Program-made: the position numbers and the translations under genes
Assembly: GCF_902713615.1 (NCBI RefSeq)
Contig: NC_052157.1
Span: forward strand, 79,549,411 to 79,613,410
DNA length: 64,000 bases
Reading direction: 5' to 3'
DNA from: Scyliorhinus canicula
Lineage: Eukaryota
Shown: one piece after another, positions 287 to 30,068 of the stretch
How positions within the stretch are numbered: the stretch's first letter is position 1
How the letters are laid out: each line of letters begins with the position of its first letter
Notes under the pieces: generated by a model
What the model saw: only the letters and a program-made list of their open reading frames with translations
Database searches by the model: none
What the model was told of the DNA's origin: nothing

Positions 287-1729
287 TTATTTTGAGGCTA
301 TGTCCCCTAGTTCTGCTTTCACCCGCCAGTGGAACAACCTGCCCGCATCTATCCTATCTATTCCCTTCATAATTTTAAATGTTTCTATAAGATCCCCCCT
401 CATCCTTCTAAATTCCAACGAGTACAGTCCCAGTCTACTCAACCTCTCCTCATAATACAACTCCTTCAGCTCTGGGATTAACCTAGTGAATCTCCTCTGC
501 ACACCCTCCAGTGCCAGTATGTCCTTTCTCAAGTAAGGAGACCAAAACTGAACACAATACTCCAGGTGTGGCCTCACTAACACCTTATACAATTGCCAAA
601 TAACCTCCCTAGTCTTAAACTCCATCCCTCTTGCAATGAAGGACAACATTCCATTTGCCTTCTTAATCACCTGTTGCACCTGTAAACCAACTTTCTGTGG
701 CTCATGCACTAGCACACCCAGGTCTCTCTGCACAGCGGCATGCTTTAATATTTTATCGTTTAAATAATAATCCCGTTTGCTGTTATTCCTACCAAAATGG
801 ATAACCACACATTTGTCAACATTGTATTCCATCTGCCAGACCCTAGCCCATTCACTTAACCTATCCAAATCCCTCTGCAGACTTCCAGTATCCTCTGCAC
901 TTTTCGCTTTACCAATCATCTTAGTGCCATCCGCAAACTTGGACACATTGCCCTTGGTCCCCAGCTCCAAATCATCTATGTAAATTGTGAACAATTGTGG
1001 GCCCAACACGGATCCCTGAGGGACACCACTAGCTACTGATTGCCAACCAGAGAAACACCCATTTATCCCAACTCTTTGATTTCTATTAATTAACCAATCC
1101 TCTATGCATGCTACTACTTTACCCTTAATGCCATGCATCTTTACCTTATGCAGCAACCTTTTGTGTGGCACGTTGTCAAAGGCTTTCTGGAAATCCAGAT
1201 ATACCACGTACATCGGCTCCCCGTTATCTACTGCACTGGTAATGTCCTCAAATAATTCCACTAAATTAGTTAGGCATGACCTGCCCTTTACGAACCCATG
1301 CTGCGTCTGCCCAATGGGACAATTTCTATCCAGATGCCTCGCAATTTCTTCCTTGATGATAGATTCCAGCATCTTCCATTCTACCGAAGTTAAGCTCACT
1401 GGCCTATAATGTCCTGCTTTCTGACTACCTCCTTTTTTAAACAGTCGCGTCAAGTTTGCTAATTTCCAATCCATCGGGACCACACCAGAGTCTAGTGAAT
1501 TTCGGTAAATTATCACTAGTGCATCTGCAATTTCCTTAGCCATCTCTTTTAGCACTCTGGGATGCATTCCATCAGGGCCAGGAGACTTGTCTACCTTTAG
1601 CACCATTAGCTTGTCCATCACTCCCTCCTTAGTGATAACAATCCTCTCAAGGTCCTCACCTGTCATAGCCTCATTTCTATCAGTCGCTGGCATGTTATTT
1701 TTTGTCTTCCACTGTGAAGACCGACCCAA
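287..1729 (-). pseudogene. CR1 ORF2 reverse transcriptase domain
   Basis: [61 protein letters not shown]; the catalytic FADD is mutated to FADG; frameshifted relative to the endonuclease. Confidence 0.95.
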
Positions 1730-2136
1730 AAAACCTGTTCAGTTCCTCAGCCATTTCCTCATTTCCCATTATTAAAACTCCCTTCTCATCCTCTAATGGA
1801 CCAATATTTACCTTAGCCACTCTTTTTTGTCTTATATATTTGTAAAAACTTTTACTGTCTGTTTTTATATTCTGAGCAAGTTTACTCTCATACTCTATCT
1901 TACTCTTCTTTATGGCTTTTTAAGTATCTTTCTGTTGCCCCCTAAAGATTTACCAGTCCTCTAATCTCCCAGCAATCTTTGCCGCTTTATATGCTTTTTC
2001 CTTCAATTTGATACTCTCCCTTTTTTCCTTAGATATCCACGGTCGATTTTCCCTCTTTCTTCCGTCCTTCCTTTTTGTTGGTATAAACCTTTCCTGAGCA
2101 CTGTGAAAAATCGCTTGGAAGGTTCTCCACTGTTCC

Positions 2137-2949
2137 TCAACTGTTCCACCATAAAGTCTTTGCTCCCAGTCTAGCTAGAGAAGCTAGTTCTTCTCTCATC
2201 CCCTTGTAATCTCCTTTGTTTAAACACAAAACACTAGTATTTGATTTTACTTTCTCACCCTCCATCTGTATTTTAAATTCCACCATATTGTGATCGCTCC
2301 TTCCGAGAGGATCCCTAACTATGAGATCATGAATCAATCCTGTCTCATTACACAGGACACGATCTAGGACCGCGTGTTCCCTCGTAGGTTCCATTACATA
2401 CTGTTCTAGGAAACTATCGCGGATACATTCTATAAACTCCTCCTCAAAGTTGCCTTGACCGACCTGGTTAAACCAATCGACATGTAGATTAAAATCCCCC
2501 ATGATAACTGCTGTACCATTTCTACATGCATCAGTTATTTCTTTGTTTATTGCCTGCCCCACCATAACGTTACTATTTGGTGGCCGATAGACTACTCCTA
2601 TCAATGACTTTTTCGCCTTACTATTCCTGATTTCCACCCAGATGGATTCAACCTTATCCTCCAGAGCACCGATGTCATCCCTTACTATTACCCGGATGTC
2701 ATCCTTAAATAACAGAGCAACACCACCTCCCTTACCATCCACTCTGTCCTTCCGAATAGTTTGATAACCTCGGATATTTAACTCCCAGTCGTGACCATCC
2801 TTTAACCGTGTTTCAGTAATGGTCACTAAATCATAGTCATTTACGATGATTTGTGCCATCAACTCATTTACTTTATTCCGAATACTACGAGCATTCAGGT
2901 TAAGTACACTTACTTTGGTTTTTTTTACCTTTGTTTTGAATCTTAACAT
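2137..2949 (-). pseudogene. CR1 ORF2 APE-type endonuclease domain
   Basis: NARSIRNK, ITET, GGGVALL, GVVYRPP, MGDFN, SDHNMV motifs. Confidence 0.95.
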
Positions 2950-3169
2950 CTCCAGTTTTATTCCTTTTGTTATTACTGTGCCTATTCACTGAGCTCCCCT
3001 CAGTCACTGTACCTTGTACTGTCTCCCTTTTAGATTTTTGACTATGTCTTCTATGCCTTGCACATTTCCCCTTACTTCCTTTTGCTTCTGTCCCTGTTTT
3101 ACTACCTTCCAACTTCCTGCATCGGTTGCCATACCCCTTCCACATTAGTTTAAACCCTCCCCAACAGCT

Positions 3170-4103
3170 CTAGAAAACACATCGGTTTTCTAGGACATCG
3201 GTTCCAGTCCTGCCCAGGTGCAGACCGTCCGGTTTGTACTGGTCCCACCTCCCCCAGAACCGTTCACAATGCCCCAGGAATTTGAATCCCTCCCTCTTGC
3301 ACCATCTCTCGAGCCACGCATTCATCCTATCTATCCTGACATTCCTACTCTGACTGGCTCGTGGCACTGGTAGCAATCCTGATATTACTACCTTTGAGGT
3401 CCTATTTTTTAGTTTAACTCCTGACTCCCTGAATTCCGCTTGTAGGACCTCATCCCGTTTTTTACCTATATCGTTGGTGCCTATGTGCACCACGACAGCT
3501 GGCTGTTCACCCTCCCCCCCCCCCCCCCAGAATGTCCTGCAGCCGCTCCGAGACATCCTTGACCCTTGCACCCGGGAGGCAACATACCATCCTGGAGTCT
3601 CGATTGCGCCCACAGAACCGCCTGTCTATTCCCCTTACGATCGAGTCCCCTGTCACTATAGCCCTGCCAGTTTTCTTCCTGCCCTGCTGTGCAGCAGAGC
3701 CAGCCACGGTGCCATGAACCTGGCTGCTGCTGCCTTCCCCTGGTGAGCCATCTCCCTCAACATTATCCAAAGCGGTATATCTGTTTTGCTGGGAGATGAC
3801 CGCGGGGGACACCTGCACTGCCTTCCTACTCTTGCTCTTTCTTTTGGTCACCCATTTTCTACCTCCCTCAGTAACTTTCACCTGCGGTTTTACCAACTCG
3901 CTAAACGTGCTATCCACGACCCCCTCAGCATCGCGGATGCTCCAAAGTGAGTCCATCCGCAGATCCAGAGCCGTCAAGCGGTCTAACAAGAGCTGCAACT
4001 GAACACACTTCTTGCACGTGAAGGAGCCAGGGACAGTGGACGTGTCCCTGAGCTTCCACATCGCACACGAGGAGCATGACACTGGTCTGGGATATCCTAC
4101 CAT
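3170..4103 (-). pseudogene. CR1 ORF1 (N-terminal Cys zinc finger/leucine zipper plus SGNH esterase), frameshift in poly-C at ~3515-3528
   Basis: CSSC..CKKC then LQLLLDRLTAL; GDSIVRG, CLPGARV, VVHIGTND, DGLHL split over two ORFs. Confidence 0.9.
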
Positions 4104-4981: not shown

Positions 4982-5670
4982 GAGCACTGTGAAAAATCGC
5001 TTGGAAGGTTCTCCACTGTTCCTCAACTGTTCCACCATAAAGTCTTTGCTCCCAGTCTACCTTAGCTAGTTCTTCTCGCATCCCATTGTAATCTCCTTTG
5101 TTTAAACACAAAAAAACGAGTATTTGATTTTACTTTCTCACCCTCCATCTGTATTATAAATTCCACCATATTATGATCGCTCATACCGAGAGAATCCCTA
5201 ACTATGAGATCATGAATCAATCCTGTCTCATTACACAGGACAAGATCTAGGACCGCTTGTTCCCTCGTAGGTTCCATTACATACTGTTCTCGGAAGCTAT
5301 CGCGGATACATTCTACTAACTCCTCCTCAAGGTTGCCTTGACCGACCTGGTTAAACCAATCGACATGTAAATTAAAATCCCCCATGATAACTGCTGTACC
5401 ATTTCTACATGCATCAGTTATTTCTTTGTTTATTGCCTGCCCCACCATAACGTTACTATTTGGTGGCCGATAGACTACTCCTATCAGTGACTTTTTCGCC
5501 TTACTACTCCTGATTTCCACCCAAATGGATTCAACCTTATCCTCCAAAGCACCAATGTCAGTCCTCACTATTGCCCGGATGTCATCCTTAAATAAAAGAG
5601 CAACACCACCTCCCTTACCATCCACTCTGTCCTTCCGATTAGTTTGATACCCTCGGATATTTAACTCCCA
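4981..5670 (-). mobile_element. Second CR1 endonuclease fragment of the same family, abutting the 5' end of the first element
   Basis: Near-identical to 2096-2788 but with scattered substitutions; ORF 5062-5676 has the same EN motifs. Confidence 0.93.
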
Positions 5671-6240
5671 GGGCACTGCAGTTCGACAGGGGGATTAGCA
5701 ATGGTGGCCGAATGATAGTGGAGGAACGGCCACATTATTCCAAGTCAGAATGCATAGTACATAGAAAAGGGATATGTAGGTTATGGTATGTCTCCGCAAC
5801 TGCTGCCCTTGGCCAGCTGGATGGTTCACATTCTCAGTGGGCAATGGACAGTGAATAACAAGTGGCTACTTTCAGCAGCGCAGCTTGTAGTGTGTCCACT
5901 GCTTTCACTGTCGTTGATGGAAGCATTGCATCTGTCCTGTGATGGGTATAATTCCAATCAAGTGGAATACCTTCCCATCAATAATGTCGCGACATTTTTG
6001 AGTGTGGTTGTAGCTGCAGTCCGCAAGGGAGGAAGAGATATTGAACGACAGGCCTGACTTGAGTCTTTTACCTGGTGGTGAGGCTTCGGGAAACATGAAT
6101 GTGAGACCATCTCCTTAGAATTTGCTAGCATACTTTTGTAACGATAGAATTAATATGGCATTTCCAATAAAGTGTTTTCTTAATAGAAACACCAGCGAGC
6201 CTCATAGCCGTGGACTCTTCAGTTTTAATGTAATTGGATG
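5671..6240 (-). mobile_element. Old L2/CR1-group LINE RT C-terminal relic
   Basis: Minus-strand translation IKTEESTAMRLAGVSIKKTLYWKCHINSIVTK resembles the LGV.ID..L.W..HI thumb motif; the downstream DNA resembles a common shark LINE 3' region (recalled, not searched). Confidence 0.55.
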
Positions 6241-9663: not shown

Positions 9664-10715
9664 CAGGTGCTCTCCGGTTCGAGTTGGACATTGTAATTCA
9701 GGTACAAATGGCATGAATATTAACTGCCACATAGCGTGCTAAGTGGAAATATGGTTCTGATCTTGCTGCAAATGCTGTTCAATTGTATAAATACACTTGT
9801 TGTCGTAAAGTGGGCGGAAGATTGTGCAATACACATTATTTTCTTTTTACGATTGAAGGAAAATTATTGAGGACACAGTTGTATTTATTTGGACCCAGGG
9901 CAGTAATCAGCGGTTTTCAGACCAGCACCGTTTTGCCATTCTGAGATTGACTACCAGCATTTGCAGGCATCTTAACTATTTTTATTTATGGGATACATTA
10001 GTCCACGTACTGCAGAGTTGCCACGTAGAAAAGGCTGACTTCCGTTTTACTACTGCTTCTCGATTTCTCACTCATTCGCAAGCTGGGTTGGGCTTCAGTT
10101 TTGTCGCTGTCACCACGCCACTTGCCTTCGCCTGTTCCCTCCAAGTTTTTGCCGAGGCTCAAATGAGATCAGGAACAGATTCGTCCGAGGAAACCCCAAA
10201 GTGCACATTAATCGTTATTGTTGAGCTGAATGGTGTTTGATGGCACCGTTAATTAAACTTTCTATCAAGTCGGTGACCACCGATAATGGAATAATTAGGC
10301 CGTAAATGCCACTGCCGGAATTGTTTACATAGCGTCAGGACAAACATTGGCAATTTCAACACTTGCCCATGACATTCTTGGAAGAGTACGGCTTGGCTGC
10401 TCGTGCGGCGAGTCCTAGTGCAACAGGCGTCAATACCATTGCCTGCATATTGTCATCAGCTGCAGCCTTTATAAGGTGCAGTACCAGCAGGTTTTTACTA
10501 ATATTAACTATTGGATAATAACTCACACGAAAAAAAAGTCCAATTATCACTCCAATTCAGACCAGATTTGGACATTAGCGCAATTTCACAACTGTGGTCA
10601 AACATTATCCTCCTTTCATCGGTAGTTTCAAACTACAGGTCATAACTTTAAAGTATATTTCTACTTCGGCTACATGCGCAAGATTAATTCAGTTTCCGTG
10701 AATTACTGTGCGTTG

Positions 10716-10753
10716 TTAAGCTTGCAGATGATCTAACTGTCCGACAAAAACAT
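10716..10753 (-). CDS. Terminal coding exon of a putative coiled-coil micro-exon gene: (D)VFVGQLDHLQA-stop
   Basis: Acceptor ttttctcccttaatcag|ATGTT, phase 1, TAA at 10716-10718; begins ATGTT like the 36-nt exon at 15690; minus-strand AATAAA at 9981-9986 and 9884-9889. Confidence 0.68.
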
Positions 10754-11136
10754 CTGATTAAGGGAGAAAATTCGTCTTGCTTTACTCATCTTCTGCTAGC
10801 GCCTAGAATAAGCTAAATTCAATGTAATGGATGTGCTGCGATCAACACCGAATTTCAAGCAAATCTGTACAATATCTGGAAATGATCCGTTCCAATAACA
10901 GTTCAAAAATCAAAATGAAAAAAGAAGAATATAGTGTATTTAATAAATAGCTATCGAGGTATTCCAAACCACTGCAGCAAATACAAATTTTTACAACAAA
11001 CACTGGATGTTCTCATTTTACTTATTCAAGAGAAAATTTCACAATTAATTGTGTAACAATAAGACATACGAAATGATGCATATAATTGCTGCAGTAGTTA
11101 ACTTGAAAAGGAAAATGATTCAAAAAGCAGAGTTAC

Positions 11137-11163
11137 CTAATTGACATTTAACCAACGTATTTT
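11137..11163 (-). CDS. 27-nt micro-exon (E)NTLVKCQL
   Basis: tttatcttttccag|AAAATACGTTGGTTAAATGTCAATTAG|gtaact; phase 1-1; paralogous to the 16164 exon (LxxCQ). Confidence 0.8.
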   Translation of the reverse strand, partial: KIRWLNVN

Positions 11164-11689
11164 CTGGAAAAGATAAATGAAACGAAGCGCAAGTGATACT
11201 TTAAAGTGAGCAAGAATACTATTAACTTGAATTATCCTACGTAATCTGGTGCAGATGAAAACAAAGTGAATTGTCTCTTTGCATTTGAAATTCGCATTTT
11301 CTATACTTTAATGTTGTCAATAATTAGATAAATTTGCTTTGCATAGAATGACATTTGTTATGGGGAATCTGCAGACAAATGCCGAACAATTTTTGCAGTG
11401 AGTGTCTGGTGCAATTTCACCTTTTAATCGGAAAAGCATTGGTGACGAAATATGATATAGAATCTTCACATTTGTGATTGCGAATGGTTCAATTCCAATA
11501 TAATTAGCATGCGAAGTGGAAGGCACATGAAAACAAAATATCAACTATGTGTGTTGAAATGTTCATTGCATTTCTATGCAATTGAGCCAATCCAAGTCAG
11601 TTTTGTATATATCGCAATGAAATCACAAAATCACAAAGTCACTCTATTGTCAAAATATTGTCGCATTTCAAAAATCATGTCGATTTAAA

Positions 11690-12110
11690 TTTATTGTTCC
11701 ATTACACCGAGGTACAATGAAAACAATTGCACTGTTATCGATCCAGGCAGGTTGTTTCAGACATGAAAAACACAGGGCATACGAGAAATACACAAGGCCG
11801 CAGAGATCGGGTGAATCTTCCGGACTATAATACGACAACAGTACAAAAGATACGGAGAGGGATCTGTTCAATCGATAAGACGGTCACTCAGGAGTCGAGT
11901 AACACCGGCCCGAAGCTCTTTATGAATCTGTTTGAGCATGTTTTAATAATTCTGTATCTTCTGACCCATGGAAGAGATGGAAGATGTGATCGCGTGGGTG
12001 GGAGGGATTTTTGATTATGTTGCCCGCATTTCCAATGCAGCAGGGATGTCAATGGATGGACGGTTCTCGTGAAGGTCGGACTGCGTTCAGGACTCTCTGT
12101 TGCTTGCAAA
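11690..12110 (-). mobile_element. Decayed Rex1/Babar-like LINE 3' fragment
   Basis: TGTATCTTCTGACCCATGGAAGAGATGGAAG...TTGATTATGTTG resembles the antisense 3' end of this LINE group (recalled, not searched). Confidence 0.5.
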
Positions 12111-14864
12111 ATCTAATAAACATACAAATGGTTCCACATTAGCAATGTCGTGACAACAATGCCAACGTTTTCCTTATTTTTCTTGGTTAATTGTTGTGCC
12201 TGACTAGGCGAAATTGCAAAAGATTAACTCACGATTGCCGTTACTGAAAAAGGCGGGTATCTATCGATGTAATTATTCTTTTGCGAAATAAACAGAATCA
12301 CACATTGGCAGTGAGGAAACACATTAGGTTTTGTTAACCCCTGATTTCCGCATCTTTCATTCACTCATTTCATGCTTGAATACAAATTGTCCCTGTTAGT
12401 CTTTGAATCACAGCCAGAATTGTTACAAACGCAGCCGATGTTTATACTCGATGCGAAAATTAGGAGACCCTGCTCCATCGCTCCTGCTGTCGTTCTTTGT
12501 GACTGACAGTCTATTTACTACTAATCGCACCCTAGAAAATTGGTGTCATTCCTGCAACGTATTGCAACAAACAACCGTGGCACATGGAGACACAGGCCAA
12601 TTTTAATCGCAGTTGAAAGGATTCTACAGCGTATAATATACGTTTGGAAGGTGGAAATGCATTTCATCCATTGCAGAGGATATCAGAAGATGCAGACAAG
12701 TCAACCTACGTTGATAATATCCTGCAAGGATGTCAATATAACATTGACCAAAAGGCGAGGTTCCTCCGTTCCTTTTCCCACAGAACGTTAATTGTTGGGG
12801 AGCTGCTTTCTCGCCTTTCCTCTCGGAATCGGATGTCTATGTGCCCACACCGAACTAGACAGCTTTGATGCAATAAACTTGCTGAGGTGCCTCGAGTAAT
12901 GAAGAAACAGAGTTGTAATCATTGCAGCATCGTTCCACAGCTCACTCAGACTTGCAATTTCTTGCGGACTGTCGCTCTCGACAGAATTTACAACGTTAGC
13001 ATTTAAAACTCCCTTCCTGGTGTGAACTTCCTCACGCAGGCTGGGTGAGACTGGAGCCCTGAAGCGAGCACCTGGCTCAATCGCCGTTGAGGAACTGCGG
13101 CGGAGAGAGCAAAGGCACAGCCCCTTTCAATAGAATTTTCTTCTGTCAGGAAGACGTAAAACAGGAAAATTGTCGGCAGCAGGTCCGTTTTGAGGACAGT
13201 AGCTCAGAGCGAAGAAAGAGAGAAAACCAACCGGGAAACCAGAAAGGAAGGAAACCACAAGACAGCGACGTGGAGGGGCAAGGATCAGTCAGGTCAATTT
13301 CAAGGATTGTTGGACAAATTGTGGGTGCAGGGTATAGTCAAACGAAGGAGGCGTTTTTCAACGAATGGATCGAGGCGCACTGCAGCTCGAACTGAATGGG
13401 ATGGAGTGCCCCATGGAAGGAGAAGTGGAAGTGAATTTGGTCAGGAATGGTGTTGTGTCAGTTCGCATCGTGAGACAGCGTCACAGCAGGCCAGAGGATG
13501 ACCTTGAAGTTACTCAGTTATACCTACGGCGAATTCAGACCGGATGAGCGCAGCGTACCGCCAGTTGAGGACATCAGTCCGGAAGCAAGTGAATCATTCC
13601 GCTCGTGGGCGTCTGACATAGAGTGGAACTGTGACGCGTCGCATCGAGAGAAGGTTATCAGACCTGTCAGTGAGGTCAAGCTCAAAAATAGTTGTCTGAA
13701 CAGGTTATAACGGCCGGGACGAGGTCTTGTATATTTGGTGTGTGATCCTCTTAAGCATGCTGTGTATGATATTTTCAGTGTGACGCTGGCTCCGATTGTT
13801 TCAATTCTTGCTCCGCTGTTAGAGCTAATTGTATTTTCTTCGCCCAAATTCCCTCAGTGCAATTAGTAAAACAAAACAGGCAAGATCTTGTCAAGTTAGC
13901 GATTTAAAACGGTTATGATGGATGTGTCCTTTTCCTGAACAATCGACAAGAAGAAGATAGCAGTTTTGGGCCATTGATGGGTAAGCAGTTGAATGGAAAT
14001 TTCCTTGAGTGATTCCCCAGCTCATCATTTGGTTCAACAGGATGATTGGTCCATTGTCTTAACGATAGGATTTGTGCATATCTCAGGTGATTACCATCAG
14101 AAACCAAAAAAAGTCATAACTTTGCGGAGAATCTCGGAAGTTTTCTCTGGTTTGCATGAATATTTAGGTCTCAACCGACAACACAGGAACAATAACAATT
14201 TTCAAGATCACTATCATTAATGCCGAATGCTTCTTTCATAGTGATGTATGGAATATTGCTTCGCCCATTCAATGATCAAAAATGGGAACTCTCTCCATCT
14301 TTTTGTTTTCAACTTAATGTGCTCATTTGGCGCACAACTGCGACTTATGTCACAATTACGACCCATTTCCGAGTAAAGGTGATGTTTATCGTATAACGAC
14401 TTGACTGCAAACTCAATTTCAAATACATTTTGGATTTTTAGAAGTATCCTGATGATCAGTTACGCCCATTCCAGAGTTTCATCAAATATCCAAATCACCT
14501 TTACAAGACTGGCGTATGCCATATAATTTCAAAATCAATCGACAGAATGTGAACCATTATTAGTGATGTAATTTAGGACAGCTGGCAAGGACATTATACA
14601 CAGCAGCGTCCGACAATCAAAAATGCTTAACGGTCAGTACCTGATCGCTTTCAGTCTTATTGCTTGCAGGTTGCACATTGTTCAGGTCAAAGTGTAGAAC
14701 CAATATCCCCTTGTTAAAAAGAGTTTATAGTGCTGTTCTGCAACCATTTAGCAAAGCAGAACAATCCAAAACTGTTGTACCATTTCAGGAACATGGTGAA
14801 GGAGAGTGTTTCCCTTCTTCAGTACTGCGATTTCGGACAGAAACGATTATGTGCATTGATCCAT

Positions 14865-15095
14865 TTTTTTTCCAGCTAAATTTGAAGTAACCAATTCTCT
14901 TTTTCCAGTGAAGTGTTGATTTAGTGTGACCAATCCATCCACCCTGTAGATATTTTGGTTGTGAGTATGAAACCCACGCAGAAATGTGGGGAATATGCCA
15001 TCTGCACACGTGCAGTGACCGGGAAGGGCAGTGATCGATCCCGGGTCCAGAGCGCCGTGAGGTAGCAGTGCTAACCATGGTGCCAGCGTGCCGCG
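14865..15095 (-). mobile_element. tRNA-derived SINE, decayed
   Basis: Minus strand GCGGCACGCTGGCACCATGGTTAGCACTGCTACCTCACGGCGC...GGATCGATC. Confidence 0.8.
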
Positions 15096-15689
15096 TCAGC
15101 TGCGTTTCTTACTGAAGTGCAACTTGCACTTAATTAAATCTGATTCCAACTGATGGGAACTGATAGTCAGCACAAACCTCCATCTGTAGTTAATTCGTAT
15201 TCATTCAAACTAATCCGTCATGAGACTGAAGGGTTCTAAGTCTTCTCTGGTGTTTTCAGAATTCTCCAACATTTGTGATGCTAACTTTAGTTATAATTGA
15301 TGCCTGCATATTGTTACTCGTGCAGGTAAAATTTTAGTAATTATAGTATCTCTATTGCAATTTAACACCATTTAAAAAGTATTCGACCTGAAGTAGCATA
15401 AATTTAGAACAGTTCAAGAACCGCAATTTTTGCTCATGCCGATTTACTTTTTGACATCCGCCTTCTGATGTTTACGAAGTAACTTTCTTTTGATGTCAAA
15501 TTAAACTCTGCATAATTACTGAATTGTATTTGTGTTGTTTTCCTGAGGAAGAAAAGGACCCTTAATGCTAAAGTTTCGGCATTTCCATGGCTTCGAGACT
15601 GACAGATTGACATTCAGTGACTTTAAACATAATTTGCACGTCTTAATTAATCGCGAGTTCGATGTTTAGGAGGCAATATTATTCCTTAC

Positions 15690-15725
15690 CTGTATCACTC
15701 AGAAGTTTCTTCAGAATGAGAACAT
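15690..15725 (-). CDS. 36-nt micro-exon (D)VLILKKLLSDT
   Basis: cccttcgcttttccag|ATGTTCTCATTCTGAAGAAACTTCTGAGTGATACAG|gtaagg; phase 1-1; open frame. Confidence 0.82.
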
Positions 15726-16040
15726 CTGGAAAAGCGAAGGGATAATTTCTATTTTGGCGTATTTTATTAAGGCGCAGTGGCAGGGTATAAGACAATGGCA
15801 CGTCAAAGAGGATGAACTGTGTTGTGACTTACGAATGAGCGTTGAGTTAATTAGAAATAACTATTTTTCTGTAGATTTACATTTTCAACTTCCCAATTAA
15901 TCTCGCACATTCTTATTCGTGTTTTATCGGGTATTTTGACAGTATTAGTAAGTGTGTGGGATTTTGACAGAAAATTATCATTATCGGCAAAACGGCTTTA
16001 TTTCACAATAATCACCCGTAACCTATATTCAGATACTCAC

Positions 16041-16067
16041 GGTAGTTGGTTTTGCAGTTTTTCAACT
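16041..16067 (-). CDS. Possible additional or alternative 27-nt micro-exon (E)LKNCKTNY
   Basis: tgtcctgatctcag|AGTTGAAAAACTGCAAAACCAACTACC|gtgagt; phase 1-1; LxxC motif; but inclusion shifts the heptad register. Confidence 0.35.
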
Positions 16068-16163
16068 CTGAGATCAGGACAACACATTTGTCACTTGAAA
16101 CTTGTCACACCAATAACAACAGTTTTTGAAAAGATTAATCTTTCGGACGGACACCGGGCTTAC

Positions 16164-16190
16164 CTGCCTGACAGACGTTCAACTCATCTT
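16164..16190 (-). CDS. 27-nt micro-exon (E)DELNVCQA
   Basis: tttctttttcttgacaattatag|AAGATGAGTTGAACGTCTGTCAGGCAG|gtaagc; phase 1-1. Confidence 0.82.
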
Positions 16191-16648
16191 CTATAATTGT
16201 CAAGAAAAAGAAACATGACAGCTTTAACAGATTGGTATGAAATAAACAATTATCCACAATTCTTGTAATTTATTCGTACTGAAATCAATTGGAAAGAGAA
16301 GAAATATATCAAATGGAACTTATGTCTATATATTTTGTAAAATACATCGGAGGTTGCTTGATGGCTTGACATCACAAGTTCAACAATAATTGACTGGCAG
16401 AGGTTTCCAGGTGTCAAGATTTCAAAGGCAGTTTATTTTACTTATGAAAAGTCATTATATTGAATACACCGCGTCTCGTTTCTTGAAACGTCAAGTTGGG
16501 ACCTTCAACAGAGAATGCGTTGCACTTCTGTGTAATTTCTTCGGCAAAAGCAAGATCTTTCTCTGTGGATATCTCGCTCAATGATATAATCGAAGAGTTT
16601 CTTGCATTATGTGAAACACTAAATTTATAACGGCATCCCATTCACAGT

Positions 16649-17233
16649 ACAAAGAACAAAGAGAATTACAGCACAGGAACAAGCCCTTCGGCCCTCCCAG
16701 CCTTCGCCGATCCAGATCCTTTATCTCAACCTGTCTCCAATTTTCCAAGGTCTACTTCTCTCTGTTCCCGCCAGCTCATATACCTGTCTAGATGCCTCTT
16801 AAATGATGCTATCGTGCCCGCCTCCACCACCTCCGCTAGTAAAGCGTTCCAGGCACCCACCACCCTCTGCGTAAAAGACTTTCCACGCACATCTCCCTTA
16901 AACTTTCCTCCTCTCGCCTTGAAATCGTGACCCCTTGTAACTGACACCCCCACTCTTGGGAAAAACTTGTTGCTATCCACCCTGTCCATACCTCTCGTAA
17001 TATTGTAGACCTCAATCAGGTCCACCCTCAACCTCCGTCTTTCCAACGAAAACAATTATAAACTACTCAACCTTTCTTCATAGCTAGCACCCTCCATACC
17101 AGGCAAAATCTTGGTGATCCTCCTCTGCCCCCCTCCAAAGCATCCACATCCTTCTGGTAAAGTGGCGACCAGAACTGCACGCAGTATTCCAAATGTGGCC
17201 GAACCAAAGTCCTATACAACTGTAACATGACCT
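16649..17233 (-). mobile_element. 5'-truncated CR1 3' fragment
   Basis: [41 protein letters not shown]; TTCTTTGT-type tail. Confidence 0.92.
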
Positions 17234-17639
17234 GAAGTGTGAGCGTTATAGTAATTATATTAAAAATATGTGTACCAAATAAAATACATTTTAGTGGATC
17301 ATAGCAAAGCTTCGGTTAATTTAACAAGTACAACTGTTGACGGTTAATCCAGAACGTTTTCAACCATTTAGCTAAAATGCTGTCCTCATAATTAATTGAT
17401 AACTTCGGATGAAAAAGTGCGTAATTTATTATTGTTGTTATATTGCCCGGCATTTGAGTCTTGGCATCTGCCTGATGCAGCTGATATCAAATGAATCTAC
17501 CACATGCTGAGCAAAAACGAAGAGCTTCCAGTTCATATAATTGGAGAGGGAAACTTCTTTTCAGCACAATGGCTACTGCATTGCATATGTCCGCACTTTC
17601 AAATATATTTGAGAGTTAACCACGAGTTCATTATCTCAC

Positions 17640-17675
17640 CTGCATGTGTGAGATCTTTAAAAATTTTGCTCCGTT
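17640..17675 (-). CDS. 36-nt micro-exon (x)RSKIFKDLTHA
   Basis: gcattggatttgcag|AACGGAGCAAAATTTTTAAAGATCTCACACATGCAG|gtgaga; phase 1-1; continues the heptad register. Confidence 0.72.
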
Positions 17676-17879
17676 CTGCAAATCCAATGCATTGTTTTTA
17701 GATGTTTATTCAGCGCGGCAGAACTTGCAAGACATTTTCCTCCACGCTTGTCTCCCATAATAAGCAACATATTCAATGTGATGTGATTTTCTGATGTGAC
17801 ACTCGTATGCCAGACAAGATCATATCAAACGACAAAGTTGATAATAACATCAATCATATTTTGATGTTTCAAAGCCAGT

Positions 17880-18103
17880 TTCCCCACCCAATCTGTTTGG
17901 ACACTAAGGGCAACTTAGTATGACCAATCCATCTAACCTGCGCATCTTCTTACTGTGGGAGGAAGCCAGAGCATCCGGAGGAAAACCACGCAGGCACAGG
18001 TGAACGTGCAGACTTCGCACAGGCAGTGACCCAAACCGCGAGTCGTGCCTGGGACCCTGGAACTTGAAGCAACTGTGCTAAGAAACATGCTTCCATACTG
18101 CCC
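17880..18103 (-). mobile_element. tRNA-derived SINE, decayed
   Basis: Minus strand GGGCAGTATGGAAGCATG...CCTCCGGATGCTCTGGCTTCCTCCCACAG. Confidence 0.8.
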
Positions 18104-18559
18104 TTTGTTTCCCCAGAAAAGTATAATTCACTGCGTGATTACTTGAAGCAATCCAGGTCAGCAAAGCAAAACCAAATAAGGAAGCAGCCAATTTAAAGTT
18201 CAGAGCACTTGAAGTTGAACACCATTCATTAAAGGGCTAAGCTTGGCGTTATTGGTTTAATCATGAAAAAACTGCGAAAACGCGTCACCATACTCCACTC
18301 ACCGACAAGTGGACAATTGCTTCCCGACTTTTTAATTTGAAATTTGAACATCGATTTGGTACTTGGTGTCGTGTTTAATAATTTAGTAAACCGTTATGGT
18401 AGCGAATACGCTGTCTCATTCTTTAACTCCAAGCATCCGGTTGAAATTGGTTTCTTTTGAAAAGTCAATATGTTGGGAGTGTGGAAAGGTCCTAGGAAGG
18501 ACAGTCATCCTGGGTAGCAAGTTTGGCACCTCCCACAGGGTAAGGTTTTAATCAACTGG

Positions 18560-19130
18560 GAACTTCTGGTTATAATGTTCATACAGACAAGACTCACAAA
18601 TTGGAGTCAGAGCATATCATTGTTGTTTTGAATCTGCAAAAAGGTTTTCCTGAATCTGTACTACTGAAATGCAAACATGTCCACTTTTGATATGTCAGCA
18701 TTTTTGGGAGATCGGATGGAGTTACACATGGGGACTTATAATCATATCGTTCGAAGAGATAGAAGAGCTATCAATGCACACGAGAGGAAAGATCCTCTCG
18801 AATGTAGAATGTATCCCATTGCAATTCGTCGCCGAATACCGGCATTGCAAACATAACTCGAATCTACGAACATATCTAATTTTTGTGAGCACACAGCAAG
18901 AGCAGAGAGGAGAGATGTAGAACCCAGATATTTAGAACTAAAGAAAGCTAAGCAAATAGAGCTAAACATCAAAGAGAGGACTAGACAAGATGCGTAAGTG
19001 CAAGGAAATCAATGGTTACGTGGAAAGAGCTGGAAAGATGATCTAATGATTATAGGGTGAGCCTTGGTCCGATTGAAAGGCGAGGCAGGCTAAGGCCCCG
19101 AAGGGCCTTCACCTATTCGTTTTCTTGTGT
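18560..19130 (+). mobile_element. Highly decayed CR1 3' fragment
   Basis: Ends in AGGCTAAGGCCCCGAAGGGCCTTCACCTATTCGTTTTCTTGTGTT, similar to the CR1 3' stem-loop and tail. Confidence 0.55.
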
Positions 19131-19239
19131 TGTCATAATTCGTGAATTGGAGGACGACGTTTTCCGAGAAATAAAGCATGACGTTTGAAGATGGTTATGG
19201 GCATGGAAGGTATCCACTCAATTCATGCTCCTGACACGT

Positions 19240-20620
19240 CATGTAAGTTATTGCTGCCTAGTGGGTCAAAATGGAGCAGAGTTTGTGTTGGGGCTCGGGG
19301 CTGAAAGCACTAGCAACAGCGCCTCTCCAGATAGCTCCGGGGAAATACTCAGGGAGTCCTGCATTAATAGCTTCATTGAAAATCTGGAGGCAGTTTCGCC
19401 AACACTTCTGGTTCGGAACAGGGTCAAGGGAAATGCCGATTTTGGGGAACCACAGATTTGAGCCAGGGGGTGGGATGGAAGTTTTCGGAAATGGGAAGAA
19501 AAGGGCATTAAGACGCGCTAAACGATTTGGTTCTTTGGGGTCGGTTTTCAGGATAGAGGGAGCTCGAAGCGACGTATGGGTGGAGCAGGGAGAAGTGTTT
19601 AGATACATGCAGGTTTGGGATTTTGCCAGGAAGGAGATACAGAGGTTCCCGGAGTAACCAGCCTCCACATTGCTGGAGGAGGTGCTGACGACAAGGTGAA
19701 TGGAGAACGAAGCAGTGTGAGTGGTGTACGGAGCTATTTTGGAAAGGTTAAGGCACCACTGGAAGAGATCAAAGCAAAGTGGGAGAATGAGCTGGAAGAA
19801 GATATAGAGAAGGGGGTCTGGTCTGAGGTGCTCCGGAAAGTGAATGCCTCGACCTCATGTGCGAGATTGTGGCTGATACAGCTGAAGGTGATATGGAGAG
19901 CACACCTCACGAGGGAAGGATGCCCCGATGTTTTGAAGGAGTAGACGATGTGTGTGAGCGTTGCGGGGAGGGGGGTGGGGAGGTAATCACGTTCCTATGT
20001 TTTGGTCCTGTCAAAAGCTAAGGGAGTACTGGAAGGAGGATTTTAGGGTAATGTCCAAGGTGTTGCGCGTGAAACTGGACCCGGGTCCCCGGGAGCCCAT
20101 ATTCGGGGTGTCGGACCAGTCAGGGTTGGAAACGGATACGGAGCCAGATGTCGTAGCGTTCGACTCGTTGATCGCCCGAAGGCGTATCCTGCTGGGATGG
20201 AGAGCAGCCTCTCCATCGTGTGCCCTGGTGTGGCGGGGGACATGTTGGAATATTTAACACTTAAGAACGTTACGTTCGAACTGAGGGGAAGCTCGGATGG
20301 GGTTCTACAAGTCATGGGCAATATTTATTATGCACAATCAAGAACTGAGTAACATCGAACATTAGTTGAGGGGGATGGGTGGGAGGGTTGGGGGTGGGGG
20401 GGGGGCTGTGTATATTGAGGATGACTATGGGTAATCCCTGAATCCGTTTTGTCATTTGTTTATGTAAACATGAGTGCTGATGTTTGGGGGTTTGGTGGGA
20501 AGATGGGATCGTTGTTATTGGTATGGGGTTTGACATATTTATTGATGATTATGGTTTGTTGTTTGTGGTTGTAAATTCGGGAGAAAATGTGAAAAAGGAG
20601 GAGAAATGTTTTTAGAAATG
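19240..20620 (+). mobile_element. Older L1 ORF2 C-terminus and 3'UTR, related to the young L1 at 28-35 kb
   Basis: LKALATA, WSEVLRKVNASTSCARL..QLKV..RAHLT, HVPMFWSC, SLIARRRILLGW match the ORF at 33074-34666. Confidence 0.88.
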
Positions 20621-23600
20621 AAAGTTATTCGATGGATTGGTCTAAGAAAGGTCTGGAACAATCCTCCCCCGACTTGTAGCAACACAAGTAATACGGAATA
20701 TTCCAGAGACAATAAAGGAATTGATGGAACCGGTGAGAGATCTGTGTGCAGCAATGAGGGAAGGAGCATTCAAAGAAAGCGTACGGGATGCCATGGAGCT
20801 TGTGCGTGTTCAGTAGCCAAGGAAAGTGAATATAACATGTGTAGTTCGTGGATAAGAAACTTACCCTTGAGTTTATAACGGCCTACATTAGTTTTGCGAA
20901 GTCATCGTTCCTCTAACCGAGACCAGAAGAATATTCACCAGGTAAAAGAAGATAAACTGGACGATGATTTAATGGATATATTTGTTGTTGCAAATTTGTA
21001 CAGGGAACTGGGTAGTTTTGAGACTATGAGCAGATAGTCTGATAAGTACTGCGCCCAGCTGCAGTGCTTCAGGGAGTAGACAAGTGGCACAGAATGACTG
21101 TAGTGTTGTGAACAAGCAAGGTAAACCTTCAGAATGATAAAAAGGCAAACGGAAGGCCAGCTATATTGGTTCCGAATGAGGGTCGAAGTACGCCAATGGT
21201 CTATTTAACAAAGAATTTAAAGACAGGTTTAAATAGTGACGAGTGCGATATCCAAGTCGAGAAGCAGTGCGCGAGGGAGAAAACTCACGAGGTTTAAGAG
21301 AGTCTTGGGAATAAGGAAATGGACGGACATCCGCTTGCGGATGGCTATTTTCCAGGATCCGTGGAACAGATTGGAGGAATGAAATTGTCCAAGAACATAT
21401 TTGCTGCTAATGGTCCAGTACACTGGTCTATGAATGGAATAATTACGACTTCAAAAGGGAACAACAAAAATGCTACACAGACCAGGTAAAACTGCGTGTT
21501 ACTTACTCTAAGCTTCACTAGGCACGTAGCCTAAACTAATCAAATCCCTGTGATTCAAGCTAGCATGAATATTTCCCACAAAACTGGAACATAGGATTCT
21601 ACACATCGGAAAGAACATTTTAACTTGCAAGAACATCGGACCTGTCCTGGGTGAGCAGGAGATCTGTCTGTCTGAAAGCTTCTTTCCTCAGTCCTCCAAT
21701 TCCAGAACTATCAGAAATTTCCAGAACAAATATATTATTGGTGTCACAATTACCTAAACGATTTAAAAATAAACCCAGCAGTGTTGATGGCTTGATAACA
21801 GCTATTCCTACCTAAACCACGTTTCGTAATTTAGCGATTGTTGGAAGGGATACTAATGTATAAAGAGCCGAAGAGGAAAATAACACGCCAGTTTTGCAAA
21901 CCTACAGGGAGCGGACCTCTTGGTTCATATCTACTTGAGTGCATGATAGTTGAGAGGACAAGAAACACGTTTGGAATGTCAAAGGAAAATCCAAATACGC
22001 CGTAATTAAATGTGGACCTGAAATATTCCAAATAGGCTGTGAAGGAGGATGGGAGATGTCCCTGCCCGTCGGCAAGCTATCTGGAGTACAAGCATCGTAA
22101 ATGCACCTCCGCAATGTAAGGAAGAAGAAATTAAGACTACCACAAAGAAGGCAGAATGTGCAGAAATCATTGGGAGAATAGCCACATGCTTAAGCCGCAG
22201 TTACCCTGCCGATACCGATGGAAATAGTCACGCTTTAATGCACAATCAATTCCGTGGTGTTGAAATACTCATTGAAAGAGAGGTGATGGATTCCGAATTC
22301 AGAGATTGGGTGGAAATCAGAGCACAATCCGTTGACTGCCTAGCAATTAGGTCTAACATTTATCAATGCTGAGCAGTCCAGCACAGTTTCACAACCAAAC
22401 TAATTTGCATACTAACTGTCTGAAAAAGAAACCGACCATGGAGGAAGCAGACAAGTAAAACAGGCAAACTAATTTGATACTAGTTCGACCACGGAAAGCT
22501 TCTGGGGCTGGCTGGCGCCCCGACCGAAGGTGATTCTAGGAGCAATAACTTTGAGACCAGGATACAAAAATGATTTTGAAATGGTAAATGAATGTAACCA
22601 ATCGCTTAAAAACAGAACCGAACGAACACTTGAACTATGTGTCCAGGGCCTTATGAAAAATGGGCAAAAATGTGCGACTTGTCCTCGACAAGGGTTCCCC
22701 AATTGTTAGGGGCCACTGTACACCAAATGGCTTCCCAATGTCTTTCAGGCACCTCAAGCATCTTCATATTGTCGACGCCCAATTCACCTTCTGAGAAATA
22801 GTGCGAACAGATCACTCAAATGTAAACAAATTATTTTATAGACGTATGTATGCATATGTTAATATTTTGGAACCGTCACATGCTCTCTTCAATAGAGCAT
22901 CAACAGCACAGACACCGTTCTATGGCATACACACTCTCCATCCTCTCCCACTCTCACACACCGTCACACAAATGCTTACCACTTCTATCACGAATACTTA
23001 TTCCTTCGCTTGGAGACAGTTGTAGCTCTCGCTCACGTTCCCAGTCCTGCTCTGGGTAGCCGCCTATGAGCTCACTTTGTGTCCACACATTCCATACTCG
23101 TAGGGATCGCTTTGCTACCGCAGCCGCACGCTGACCAGTATTATCTCGTTCCGGAGGATATTAGTTCACCTGTACACAAGGCCCGCTTTGCTGACCACGG
23201 GCCATACCTGCCCCCTCCAAAGCACACTCTACAAACCCTCGTCTCCCAGGCGTATCTCCACCCCAGATGACCTGCTGTAACCCTCCACCAAGATTCAGAC
23301 TGGCTTGCCTCACCCCTGCACGGTGCCCAAGGTGATCAGTTCTGCTCCTCCTATGTTCAAGTATCCGTGCTGCGAGTTTCATTCCGAAGCACACTGACCG
23401 AGAACTCTGCTGTTACGCTCGTTGAATAAAAAGCTGTCTCGTTAAATGTCGTCCTCTGACTTCAGGAACAGTTCTGCAGCATGGATACTCCCTGGATTCC
23501 ACAGAGCACATTTGCGTAACTTTGATGCAGGCTAACTGCATTTGTGTTGTTTCAATAGTTATTATTTCTAATGAAAGCAGAATACATCTGGTTTTATTTC

Positions 23601-27320: not shown

Positions 27321-28185
27321 AACTAAGTGGATGTCAATCGGACAACAAGACATGAAAGGGCGGTGGGAATTTTAGGCTGTTTCTCAATGGCTGTTTGTTC
27401 TTCCCAGGTTTAGTAATCAACGAATTAGCTTTCCACATTCTTTCTAAATTGTTCCTTATATTCTTCATGTCGTTCATTCTCCACCATGGAGAATCGGTCC
27501 TGACGCCTAAATGGCGCAGTCGCTAATTCGACGCCAAGTCGCAATTAGACGTCACTTCGACACTGGTGTCAATGGGTTCCGGAACGCACCTATCGGTATT
27601 CCCTAGAGCCTTCCTAATTCTCACCCATCGATAAATGGAAGGCTCGATTCTCCGTTTCAGTGGTTAAGTTCTGGCTAAAATGGAAAAATGCCGGGCATTT
27701 TACGACATATAAATTGGCGCTGAAGCCTCACCGCTTATTGGAGATATGAGGGGCCTGCAGCAGCGCCGGGCGAAGTCCCGCATCTTGCACCAAAAACGGT
27801 CGGAGAATGGCAGAATCTGTGGCAACGAACACGCGTGGCGACGACATGCAGTGGTTGCGTCGGAATCATAGCGTCGGCTGTGCGTGGAACCGAGCCGACA
27901 AATGCGTCCCCACAGGCCAAACCATGGTCTGCCCTCGCAGAACAATCCCCCTCCCCCGGTCAGCGGCACGGATTGTGGCCGAGGGTAGTGGTGCTGCACG
28001 CAGTCGACAGCTGACATGCCGCGCTGCAACTACTCAGACAACACATCAACCGTGCGTTTGGGAACATGGCCCAACGGGGAAGGAAAGTCCAGGCCAAAAC
28101 TTCCGATAGCGGGCGGCGAGCGAGGAGGTCGCAGGGAGAGGGGCTCCCGCAAGCGCCAGGAAGGAACCCCCCCGACAGGCCGGAC

Positions 28186-28745
28186 GGCGGAGGAGGAGCG
28201 GGCGGCAACGGCGGAGGAGGAGCGGGCGGCAACGGCGGAGGAGCGGGCGACAACGGAGGAGCGGCGGGCGGCAGCGGCGGGCGGCGGGCGGCAGCGGCGG
28301 GCGGCAGCGGAGGAGAAGCGGAGGAGGAGCGGGCGGCAGCTGAGGAGGAGCGGGCGGCGGCGGAAGGCGGAGGCGAGGAGCGACGGCGACAGGGAGGCCC
28401 AGCAGCGGCAGGTCCAACCCCTCTCTCCCCCCCCCCCCCCCCCCCGACGCGGGCCGGGAACGGTGCGGTAGCGGCGGGCCCTCTTCCCCCCCCAAACCAG
28501 CAGCGGGACACCACCTTCCCCCCCCCAATCAGCAGCGGGGACACCAACTCCCCCCCCCCAACCAGCAGCGAGGACACCAACCCCCCCCCCCCCCCCCCCA
28601 ACCAGCAGCGAGGACACCAACCCCCCCCCCCCCCCCAACCAGCAGCGAGGACACCAACCCCCCCCCCCCCCCCCAACCAGCAGCGGGGACACAAACCCCA
28701 ACCCCCCAACCAGCAGCCCCACTCGCCCCTCCCCCCCCCCCCAAC
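28186..28745. repeat. GC-rich tandem repeats in the L1 5'UTR
   Basis: GGCGGAGGAGGAGCGGGCGGCAAC-like units x3; AACCAGCAGCG(A/G)GGACACCAA-poly(C) units, about 6 copies. Confidence 0.9.
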
Positions 28746-29231
28746 TGCAGTGACCACCACGTGGCAAGGACAAAGGGGGACTCTCTCTCTCTCTCTCCTG
28801 GGCGAGTGGAGAGAGAAAACAAAAGAAAAAAGAGACTTATATTTCTGTTCTTTTTTTTTAAAATAAAAACCCAAAAGAAACTGGTAAAGAGAAAAGGGGT
28901 GAAATAAAGGGGTAAAGGAAAGAAGGGGGGAAATAAATTTTTCATTTAAAAAAAAATATATACATATATTTTTATATATATATAAATAAAAGTAAAATAG
29001 GGTGCGGAAAAGGGGGAAAAGAAGAACAAGGAGAGAAGAAACGATGAAGGGGAAGGGGGAGAAAAAAATGCCAGAAGGGACCCAAGAGAAAGGGGGCACC
29101 GGAGGTGGACGGGGCAAAGGGCAAACCAGCTTGGGCGAACGAGTCAACACGCGAAGCAGCGGGAAGAATGTATCGCCGCATCCAAAGGGCTGGACGGGCG
29201 GGCAACCTCTCCCCTGGGGTTAGAGGGGGGC

Positions 29232-30068
29232 GTGAATTGGAAGGAAGCCATTGCAGAGGTGGTGAGGGAGCAGCTGCAGGCAATCAAGGCAGAGTTAAAA
29301 GCAGACACAGAGGCCGCAGCACAGGCAGCAATGACCAGGGCCATGTCAGGGGTGCAGCAGGCTCTGACCAGAATAGAGGAGAAAGTGGATGCCCAAGGGA
29401 AGATACTGGAAGCCCAAGGGAAGATACTGGAAGCCCACGGGGCAACCATTAAAGAGCTGGAGAAGGCAGCGACTGACGTGAGCGACCGGGTCATGTCCCT
29501 GGAGAGGGAAATGGCGAAACTGAGTGCAACACAGGGGAGCCTGAAGGGCAGGGTAGACGACCAGGAGATCAACTCGAGAAGGCAAAACATTAAGATAGTG
29601 GGCCTGCCAGAGGGGATAGAGGGTAGAAATCCCACAACATTCGTGGCTGCGATGCTGGGCTCCTTAGTGGGGCGGGAAACTTTTCCCACCCCACCGGAAA
29701 TGGACAGAGCTCATCGGTCACTGCGCCCGAAGCCCAAGGAAGGGGAAAAACCGAGAGCAGTTATAGCCAGACTGCACCGGTACCGGGATAGGGAGACAAT
29801 CCTGCGCTGGGCCAAGGAGAATAGAGCCTGCAATTGGGACGGGCACGCCATCAGAATCTACGAGGATTTTGGAGCGGACATAGCTAAGAGACGGGCGGAG
29901 TTCAACAGAGCGAAAGCAGCTCTCTATAAGAACAAAGTACGTTTTGGTATGCTGTACCCAGCAAAACTCTGGGTCACATACCAACACAAGGAATATTTCT
30001 TTACAGCCCCTGCCGAGGCGAATAGATTCGTTGAGGAGCACGGGCTGGAAAAACGCCATGGGAAGTAG
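29232..30068 (+). CDS. L1 ORF1p (coiled coil + RRM + CTD); the true start may be ATG 29068 with a frameshift near 29170
   Basis: RRQNIKIVGLPEG, DRAHR, PRAVIARL, IRIYED, LYPAKL. Confidence 0.92.
   Translation: MNWKEAIAEVVREQLQAIKAELKADTEAAAQAAMTRAMSGVQQALTRIEEKVDAQGKILEAQGKILEAHGATIKELEKAATDVSDRVMSLEREMAKLSATQGSLKGRVDDQEINSRRQNIKIVGLPEGIEGRNPTTFVAAMLGSLVGRETFPTPPEMDRAHRSLRPKPKEGEKPRAVIARLHRYRDRETILRWAKENRACNWDGHAIRIYEDFGADIAKRRAEFNRAKAALYKNKVRFGMLYPAKLWVTYQHKEYFFTAPAEANRFVEEHGLEKRHGK

Follow-up and report, generated by a model that had tools for sequence, protein, structure and literature searches.

Five segments on the minus strand of a 64-kb window of the Scyliorhinus canicula genome (the whole stretch of DNA that was analysed) are exon-like beyond chance and represent either the tail end of a shark gene missing from the annotation or the dead remnant of such a gene. 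The array is best read as the coiled-coil tail or stalk of a putative lineage-specific gene family, which may still be alive or may have died recently. Tentatively, and with a confidence that stops a little short of an even balance, we favour the view that the segments are exons maintained by selection and make up the 3' portion of an as yet unannotated shark gene. This portion would encode a coiled-coil tail or stalk and be assembled from a duplicated 27+36-nt module that encodes 21 residues, i.e. three heptads.

A sequence-only reading of this DNA had proposed segments with the sizes 36/27/36/27/terminal, separated by phase-1 introns and with G/GT donors on four of them. All five were found on the minus strand, coordinates and junctions matching the proposal, and every junction splits a codon 1+2, which corresponds to phase 1 (a slash marks the splice site):

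Micro-exon 1, 17640 to 17675, minus strand: 36 nt, phase 1-1, reads (x)RSKIFKDLTHA; ttgcag/..CAG/gtgaga
LINE 3' tail, 16605 to 17408, minus strand: inserted in the intron between micro-exons 1 and 2, outside the coding array
Micro-exon 2, 16164 to 16190, minus strand: 27 nt, phase 1-1, reads EDELNVCQA; ttatag/..CAG/gtaagc
Micro-exon 3, 15690 to 15725, minus strand: 36 nt, phase 1-1, reads DVLILKKLLSDT; ttccag/..CAG/gtaagg
Micro-exon 4, 11137 to 11163, minus strand: 27 nt, phase 1-1, reads ENTLVKCQL; ttccag/..TAG/gtaact
Last segment, 10716 to 10753, minus strand: 36-nt-type unit reading DVFVGQLDHLQA and then TAA; aatcag/.., without a donor

Joined together, the five segments have one open frame only, and it yields exactly the peptide derived previously: 53 residues with a single Gly and no Met. 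Since no in-frame Met precedes micro-exon 1, it requires a preceding exon whose last base is G, A or C. The stop codon of the last segment (10716-10718) is in frame with the spliced array and falls exactly at the former exon end of the 36-nt-type unit; the first AATAAA past it is found ~725 nt downstream, near 9990. Introns of the array are 0.4-4.5 kb long, and an ORF scan would indeed overlook all of it, as had been supposed for ORF-based annotation. Exon lengths of 9n nt could suggest a collagen; this reading was rejected, as Gly-X-Y was absent from every open frame and there is 1 Gly per 53 residues.

Splice sites were scored with an approximate PWM of general splice-site preferences and ranked against all GT or all AG. 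On this approximate scale the best splice pair in the window belongs to micro-exon 3 (acceptor in the top 0.17%, donor in the top 0.07%), micro-exon 4 combines an acceptor from the top 0.06% with the donor TAG/gtaact from the top 4.3%, and the acceptor of the last segment falls into the top 1.5%. By the same approximate PWM, the donors of micro-exons 1 and 2 belong to the top 0.2% and 0.18% of GT, respectively, and their acceptors to the top 7% and 11% of AG, that of micro-exon 1 having a weak pyrimidine tract. The term pyrimidine-tract acceptors, applied to the array by the sequence-only reading, is thus generous for micro-exons 1 and 2.

A heptad pattern extends over micro-exons 1-4 of the peptide. 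Occupancy of positions a and d was 83% in micro-exons 1-4 versus 28% elsewhere (shuffle P ~0.008), and by the a/d test the native exon order was joint first among 24 permutations; the hydrophobic moment at period 3.5 was not significant alone (P 0.10). The last segment breaks the heptad pattern with Gly at d and His at a, so that the a/d stripe described earlier persists across micro-exons 1-4 and loses its register in the terminal unit. As the sequence-only reading had noted, a pair of exons (27+36 = 63 nt = 21 residues) amounts to three heptads, and each pair keeps the heptad phase. Its placing of Cys at d is also correct, for two Cys only (micro-exons 2 and 4). The product would be a parallel alpha-helical coiled coil of ~40 residues, in which the two d-position Cys could cross-link the chains if this segment is extracellular; a disulfide- or metal-stabilised oligomer is possibly formed, a guess made purely from these two Cys.

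Growth of the array by duplication of a two-exon module, also suggested before, fits the data obtained. The two 27-nt exons are homologous (15/27 nt), with Glu, Leu, Cys and Gln at matching places and with TTG and TGTCA at equal offsets in micro-exons 2 and 4, and judged by these matches micro-exon 4 is to be regarded as a paralogue of micro-exon 2. Each 27-nt exon is followed, after 383-438 nt, by a 36-nt-type segment with 'AT GTT' (Asp-Val). Comparison of introns between the three modules revealed no significant homology; a 13-nt 'ACATTGAAT' match suggested by the MAFFT alignment, with E 3.9, was discarded as not significant. Introns have diverged, yet four strong donors, the acceptors and the open frame persist, as expected under purifying selection on old duplicates. 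Symmetric phase-1 micro-exons would allow the rod to lengthen or shorten by whole modules with frame and heptad phase intact, as in chicken BG tails. It is shown, then, that the exons have one phase and one frame, that their splice sites exceed chance by far, that the modules are homologous and that the a/d stripe passes across the joints. Counting against live exons are the lack of RNA support, of Met and of a neighbouring domain exon, together with the mediocre acceptors of micro-exons 1 and 2. To the same side belong the last unit with its broken heptad and missing donor, the moment test with P 0.10 and a splice cut-off that was chosen post hoc.

The sequence-only reading took the array for a gene whose exons should be joined by spliced reads. 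Eight RNA runs from seven studies gave zero depth on the exons and no joints at any junction of the kind that would mark an expressed protein-coding gene (one run, searched as raw reads, placed nothing and hence provided no test), and over micro-exons 1-4 there was no read signal, spliced or unspliced, in the RNA data examined. An RNA index search with the whole locus and then with the last segment and its 3' flank found no exon coverage. The 3' region was absent from 20-odd indexed RNA runs of the species, save one low-depth unspliced contig; this sole RNA-library contig at the last segment (10623-10798, depth 2.5) passes unspliced through the acceptor. RNA contig coverage of the LINE tail was massive and multi-copy, with 95-99% likeness, and the ORF at 16729-17055 resembles a LINE C-terminus. 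Since micro-exons are hard to align, their absence from contigs says little, and expression of the putative gene may be rare or confined to unsampled tissues.

Exons for other domains were sought on both sides of the array. An IgV motif scan combined with scans for donor-anchored open frames, signal-peptide-like first exons and TM segments disclosed, over the 46 kb upstream, no IgV-like frame, no signal exon and no TM exon flanked by splice sites; a hydrophobic stretch at 18934-19002, considered as a TM exon, was rejected for having no splice sites. Downstream, the 10.7 kb of minus strand up to the window end contained no B30.2-like motif, no long open frame and no WIGL, WxD..C or CTLD-start motif. 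Altogether, neither a start codon nor an upstream exon could be recognised within the 64-kb window, nor could Ig, TM, lectin or B30.2 exons; ten open frames from the introns and their vicinity had no matches in Pfam. The surroundings consist of LINE, SINE and simple repeats, and the downstream 10.7 kb on the minus strand is mostly LINE. If the gene is alive, its 5' exons may lie beyond the 46 kb upstream, or inside them in unrecognised form.

It is quite conceivable, if not our first choice, that the array is a functionless relic from a micro-exon coiled-coil family, either an incomplete gene copy or a 3' gene end in decay, stranded in transposon-rich DNA without 5' exons and untranscribed. 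Total absence of transcript signal over the exons, 46 kb of upstream DNA that yielded no coding exon and the repeat-filled neighbourhood are all consistent with such a fate, and so are the weak acceptors of micro-exons 1 and 2 and the last unit, which has no donor, a broken heptad and a stop exactly at the former exon end. For this last segment, taken separately, decay of a copy and a natural end of the protein are equally good explanations. A long-dead array, however, should have lost what is still in place here: four donors and three acceptors remain among the window's best, and micro-exons 1-4 are free of stops and frameshifts, though the introns have lost all similarity. Against recent death the argument from conserved sites is weaker, because substitution rates in sharks are slow.

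The same terminal unit, with neither a donor nor a nearby poly(A) signal, may be viewed as a dead and skipped module, in which case micro-exon 4 would splice to exons past the window start (e.g. those of a C-type lectin or other globular domain), and the array would be the neck of a type II or collectin-like receptor. The repeat length of 21 residues, equal to that of the CD23 neck, and the absence of the 3' region from RNA runs, as expected for intronic DNA, agree with this arrangement. We consider it improbable, since neither a CTLD motif nor another open domain exon was seen in the mostly LINE-derived 10.7 kb downstream on the minus strand and micro-exons 1-4 were likewise devoid of RNA coverage.

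The probability that such segments assemble by chance was estimated for 27/36-nt phase-1 open candidates with a combined splice score >=14.4, a cut-off set after seeing the data. At this post hoc cut-off the candidates in 64 kb are exactly micro-exons 1-4, on the minus strand, in the order 36/27/36/27 and within 7 kb; the plus strand of the 64-kb window has none. Among 400 simulated strands, with 0.70 candidates on average, four within 7 kb occurred in 0/400 and three in 2/400. Scanning both strands for phase-1 AG..GT segments, under strict and under relaxed criteria, and for position matches detected no further exons of this kind. Relaxed scans do yield ~260 phase-1 AG..GT open segments per strand and micro-exon 1 is little similar in sequence to the remaining 36-nt units, but against the outcome of the simulations, the empty plus strand, the motifs shared at fixed offsets by the two 27-nt exons and a heptad stripe running on across exon joints, it is highly implausible that unrelated AG..GT pairs were merely strung together by the reader.

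The favoured reading, a selected 3' coiled-coil part of an unannotated gene, can be compared with several known systems; literature on 27/36-bp coiled-coil exons, shark butyrophilin heptads and elasmobranch micro-exon coiled coils gave nothing relevant. In CD23 (FCER2) and in the stalks of type II C-type lectins a 21-residue repeat varies in copy number between species, and in CD23 each repeat is encoded by one 63-nt exon. Tetherin (BST2) has an ectodomain built as a parallel coiled coil with inter-chain disulfides formed by core Cys; it offers a model for what the d-position Cys could do here, but it does not originate from repeated micro-exons, its Cys are not periodic, and no TM or GPI signal was seen at our locus. 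The neck of CD23 is a heptad coiled coil (PMC6791321). Its 21-residue heptad unit is shared by the shark array, where the a/d stripe is held across micro-exons 1-4; the repeat here, however, is split 27+36, and an in-frame stop closes the array, whereas in CD23 lectin-domain exons come after the neck, and none of these were found here.

There is also a likeness to the cytoplasmic tails of chicken BG proteins, where a helical heptad rod is encoded by a series of tiny exons, each sharing its first and last codon with a neighbour, and exon number varies with the frame kept (PMC4046983). Tiny same-phase exons with codons split at both ends and a predicted heptad rod as their product unite the array with BG and butyrophilin tails; the BG tail, too, ends soon after the last heptad exon, and we count as a further likeness that BG genes form a multi-copy family. 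Chicken exons, however, are 21 (sometimes 24) nt long and encode one heptad each (PMC4046983), whereas those of the shark measure 36, 27, 36, 27 and 36+stop nt and only the 27+36 pair makes whole heptads. Differences from BG and butyrophilin genes also include introns of 0.4-4.5 kb, the lack of transcript evidence and no B30.2 exon in the 10.7 kb downstream; signal, IgV and TM exons, which were not found in the 46 kb upstream, may lie beyond the window. In butyrophilin proper a B30.2 (PRY-SPRY) exon comes after the heptad exons; here an in-frame stop ends the array instead.

Going further, one may suppose, as a doubtful but not unreasonable extension, that Scyliorhinus canicula has an undescribed multigene family of rods made of phase-1 micro-exons, in which a 27+36-nt pair equals three heptads and a core Cys recurs every 21 residues. 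Such a family would parallel the chicken BG tails independently and with a different tuning, its rod length changeable by whole modules, and our locus would be a short member of it or the C-terminal end of one. A dead array would be just an ordinary gene relic, valuable only as a marker of family turnover. If the array is expressed, annotation of shark genomes misses a protein class invisible to ORF and homology tracks, and the array would become the second, independent case, after avian BG genes, of rod length evolving by gain and loss of micro-exons, with the exon arithmetic (27+36 = three heptads) itself guarding the register of the helix.

Five minus-strand segments make up the array, numbered here in the order of transcription:

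17640-17675, minus strand: exon 1, 36 nt, acceptor ttgcag, donor CAG/gtgaga
16164-16190, minus strand: exon 2, 27 nt, acceptor ttatag, donor CAG/gtaagc
15690-15725, minus strand: exon 3, 36 nt, acceptor ttccag, donor CAG/gtaagg
11137-11163, minus strand: exon 4, 27 nt, acceptor ttccag, donor TAG/gtaact
10716-10753, minus strand: last segment, 36-nt type plus stop, acceptor aatcag, in-frame TAA, no donor

When these segments were read and joined by script, phase 1 (codon split 1+2) was found at every junction and the peptide (x)RSKIFKDLTHA-EDELNVCQA-DVLILKKLLSDT-ENTLVKCQL-DVFVGQLDHLQA-stop was obtained, exactly as had been proposed in the sequence-only reading. The remaining two frames are closed in each exon of the array.

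The 27-nt exons 2 and 4 are identical at 15 of 27 bases and carry TTG (Leu) and TGTCA (Cys-Gln) at equal offsets; each leads, across 438 or 383 nt of intron, to a unit beginning AT GTT (Asp-Val). This pair, seen twice, fits a duplicated two-exon module and supports the earlier proposal that the array has grown in such steps. The likeness of exon 1 to the other 36-nt units is weak. Since no significant similarity among the array introns was registered (blastn with word 7, repeat search, MAFFT), the duplication is old. The introns have diverged beyond recognition, yet the frame is unbroken and the acceptors and four strong donors persist; this survival, the chief internal argument, suggests that selection has acted on the exons through most of their history. 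The acceptor of exon 2 (16164-16190) and the first 9 nt of that 27-nt exon recur as ag/AAGATGAGT at 10784-10792 (minus strand; blastn E ~0.5), 31 nt 5' of the last segment, and lead on into a TAA; a lost 27-nt exon may have left this trace, or it may be chance.

Taken in its best register, the heptad pattern of exons 1-4 has I, L, A, L, C, V, L, L, T, L and C at a and d, together with one Arg at the N-terminal edge, so that 10 of 12 a/d residues (83%) are hydrophobic or small versus 28% at other positions (shuffle P ~0.008). Native exon order was joint first among 24 permutations in respect of this stripe, and the 12+9-residue arithmetic thus holds it in phase. Both Cys residues are at d, 21 residues apart, as stated in the sequence-only reading (n=2). 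On so short a peptide the hydrophobic-moment test at period 3.5 did not reach significance (P 0.10). The stripe stops before the last segment, because Gly is at d and His at a there. A coiled coil of ~40 residues is plausible, not proven, and its stabilisation by disulfide or metal is an idea based on two residues.

An upstream exon is required, because the spliced peptide has no Met and the frame 5' of exon 1 closes at 7 codons upstream without ATG. The open-frame scan of the window gave no credible donor-anchored upstream exon, and no signal-like first exon, IgV-like frame, TM exon or, on either strand, further unit of the 27/36-nt family was found in it. The hydrophobic stretch 18934-19002, considered as a TM exon, was rejected, being without splice sites. 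Downstream of the array no lectin or B30.2 motif is present within the window, and the nearest AATAAA lies ~725 nt beyond the stop; most of this DNA is occupied by the second LINE type listed below. No other host gene was seen in the window, which is transposon-rich overall:

287-4103 and 5062-5676, minus strand: second LINE type, RT (RVT_1 2e-31) and endonuclease (Exo_endo_phos 1e-12) frames, second endonuclease fragment
16605-17408, minus strand: LINE 3' tail in the intron between exons 1 and 2, with RNA-contig coverage
17811-18212: SINE-like piece immediately 5' of exon 1, with RNA-contig coverage
25531-26502 and 45577-46014, minus strand: open frames resembling retroelement gag and RT fragments, no Pfam match at E 0.01
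29232-34666, plus strand, with 27960-29150: L1-type element, frame break near 33.1 kb
29232-30068, plus strand: its ORF1-like frame, no Pfam match
30574-33153, plus strand: its endonuclease and RT ORF
33074-34666, plus strand: its zf-RVT frame
50200-62400, both strands: degenerate CTCAC-type simple repeat, ~12 kb

Before the L1-type element, a G/C-rich low-complexity stretch can be read as long poly-Gly/Pro frames on either strand. In the CTCAC-type repeat, long 'SLTHS' frames are likewise open on the two strands, and the repeat includes an assembly gap (62092-62325).

In an index of about two dozen public RNA runs of Scyliorhinus canicula, the best word share for the whole locus was 0.06 (run X1), the remainder giving 0.00-0.02; for the last segment with 850 nt of presumed 3' UTR it was 0.08 in X1 only and 0.00 in all others. 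On 10300-16300 X1 gave three contigs of depth 2.5-3.7 (10623-10798, 11422-11596 and 14436-14627), all colinear with the genome. The first passes unspliced straight over the acceptor of the last segment and is background DNA or unspliced RNA, no spliced message. X1 differs from the window at 10721 (C>T, which on the minus strand would make the array's last codon Thr instead of Ala) and at 11463 (T>C), probably by ordinary polymorphism between individuals. In the same interval runs X9 and X13 touched short repeats and nothing else; for X3 nothing mapped at all, which is no test of expression. Coverage by runs X6, X10, X16 and X19 on 15600-21600 was confined to transposon pieces (16605-17408, 17811-18212 and 19218-20624), with zero depth on exons 1-3 and no relevant joint in their contigs. 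Near the array the first two pieces alone were covered, and their summed depth of up to 34,000 at 95-99% likeness indicates very abundant multi-copy elements. Mapping across the array junctions thus gave no support for expression, to be read with the limits that contigs can show presence, not absence, and that reads from 27-36-nt pieces are hard to place.

The exon array claimed earlier is confirmed and real at the DNA level; its interpretation as a hidden gene is supported in part, neither spliced transcripts nor an upstream exon having been found in the runs and the window. We tentatively favour the reading of the array as part of an unannotated gene, its coiled-coil tail or stalk, with a duplicated 63-nt two-exon module and rare or tissue-restricted expression. 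Its main rival, a substantial possibility which we nevertheless doubt, is the same array already dead, a stranded 3' fragment with a decayed last module; the silence of the RNA runs speaks for it, the survival of splice sites and frame against it. That the last unit is a dead, skipped module, the gene running on beyond the window and the array being a neck rather than a tail, appears unlikely; the missing donor of this unit is in its favour, the mostly LINE DNA downstream, with no lectin or B30.2 motif in the window, against it.

The chance stringing of unrelated AG..GT pairs is very improbable. Every AG and GT of the strand was scored with approximate vertebrate matrices drawn up from general knowledge of splice sites. 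Three donors rank within the top 0.07-0.2% of GT dinucleotides and the fourth within the top 4.3%; three acceptors rank within the top 0.06-1.5% of AG dinucleotides, those of exon 1 (top 7%) and exon 2 (top 11%) being weaker. A combined score >=14.4 was reached in the whole window by exactly four 27- or 36-nt AG..GT segments open in phase 1 on the minus strand, exons 1-4, which lie inside 7 kb in the order 36/27/36/27, and by none on the plus strand. First-order Markov simulation of a 64-kb strand, repeated 400 times, gave 0.70 candidates on average, with clusters of three found twice and of four never; the threshold was chosen after the data were seen and the odds are therefore rough, but chance is no serious explanation of the four-exon cluster.

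The closest working likeness would be the cytoplasmic tails of chicken BG, where heptads are spelled by consecutive exons of 21 or 24 nt whose end codons are split (PMC4046983). Exon sizes in the array differ, however, and no IgV or TM exon accompanies it in the window; the array may resemble the BG family in layout without belonging to it. With the heptad neck of CD23 (PMC6791321) it shares the 21-residue unit, but splits it over two exons and has no lectin exons in the window. A collagen-like array was rejected despite 9n exon lengths. Heptad rods made of micro-exons are a known general kind, of which the array is an undescribed variant. In the favoured reading of a coiled-coil tail or stalk, parallel helices would be zipped along the a/d stripe, Cys at d could cross-link the chains if the segment is extracellular, and, because all exons are symmetric phase 1 and an exon pair equals three heptads, rod length could be adjusted by whole modules.
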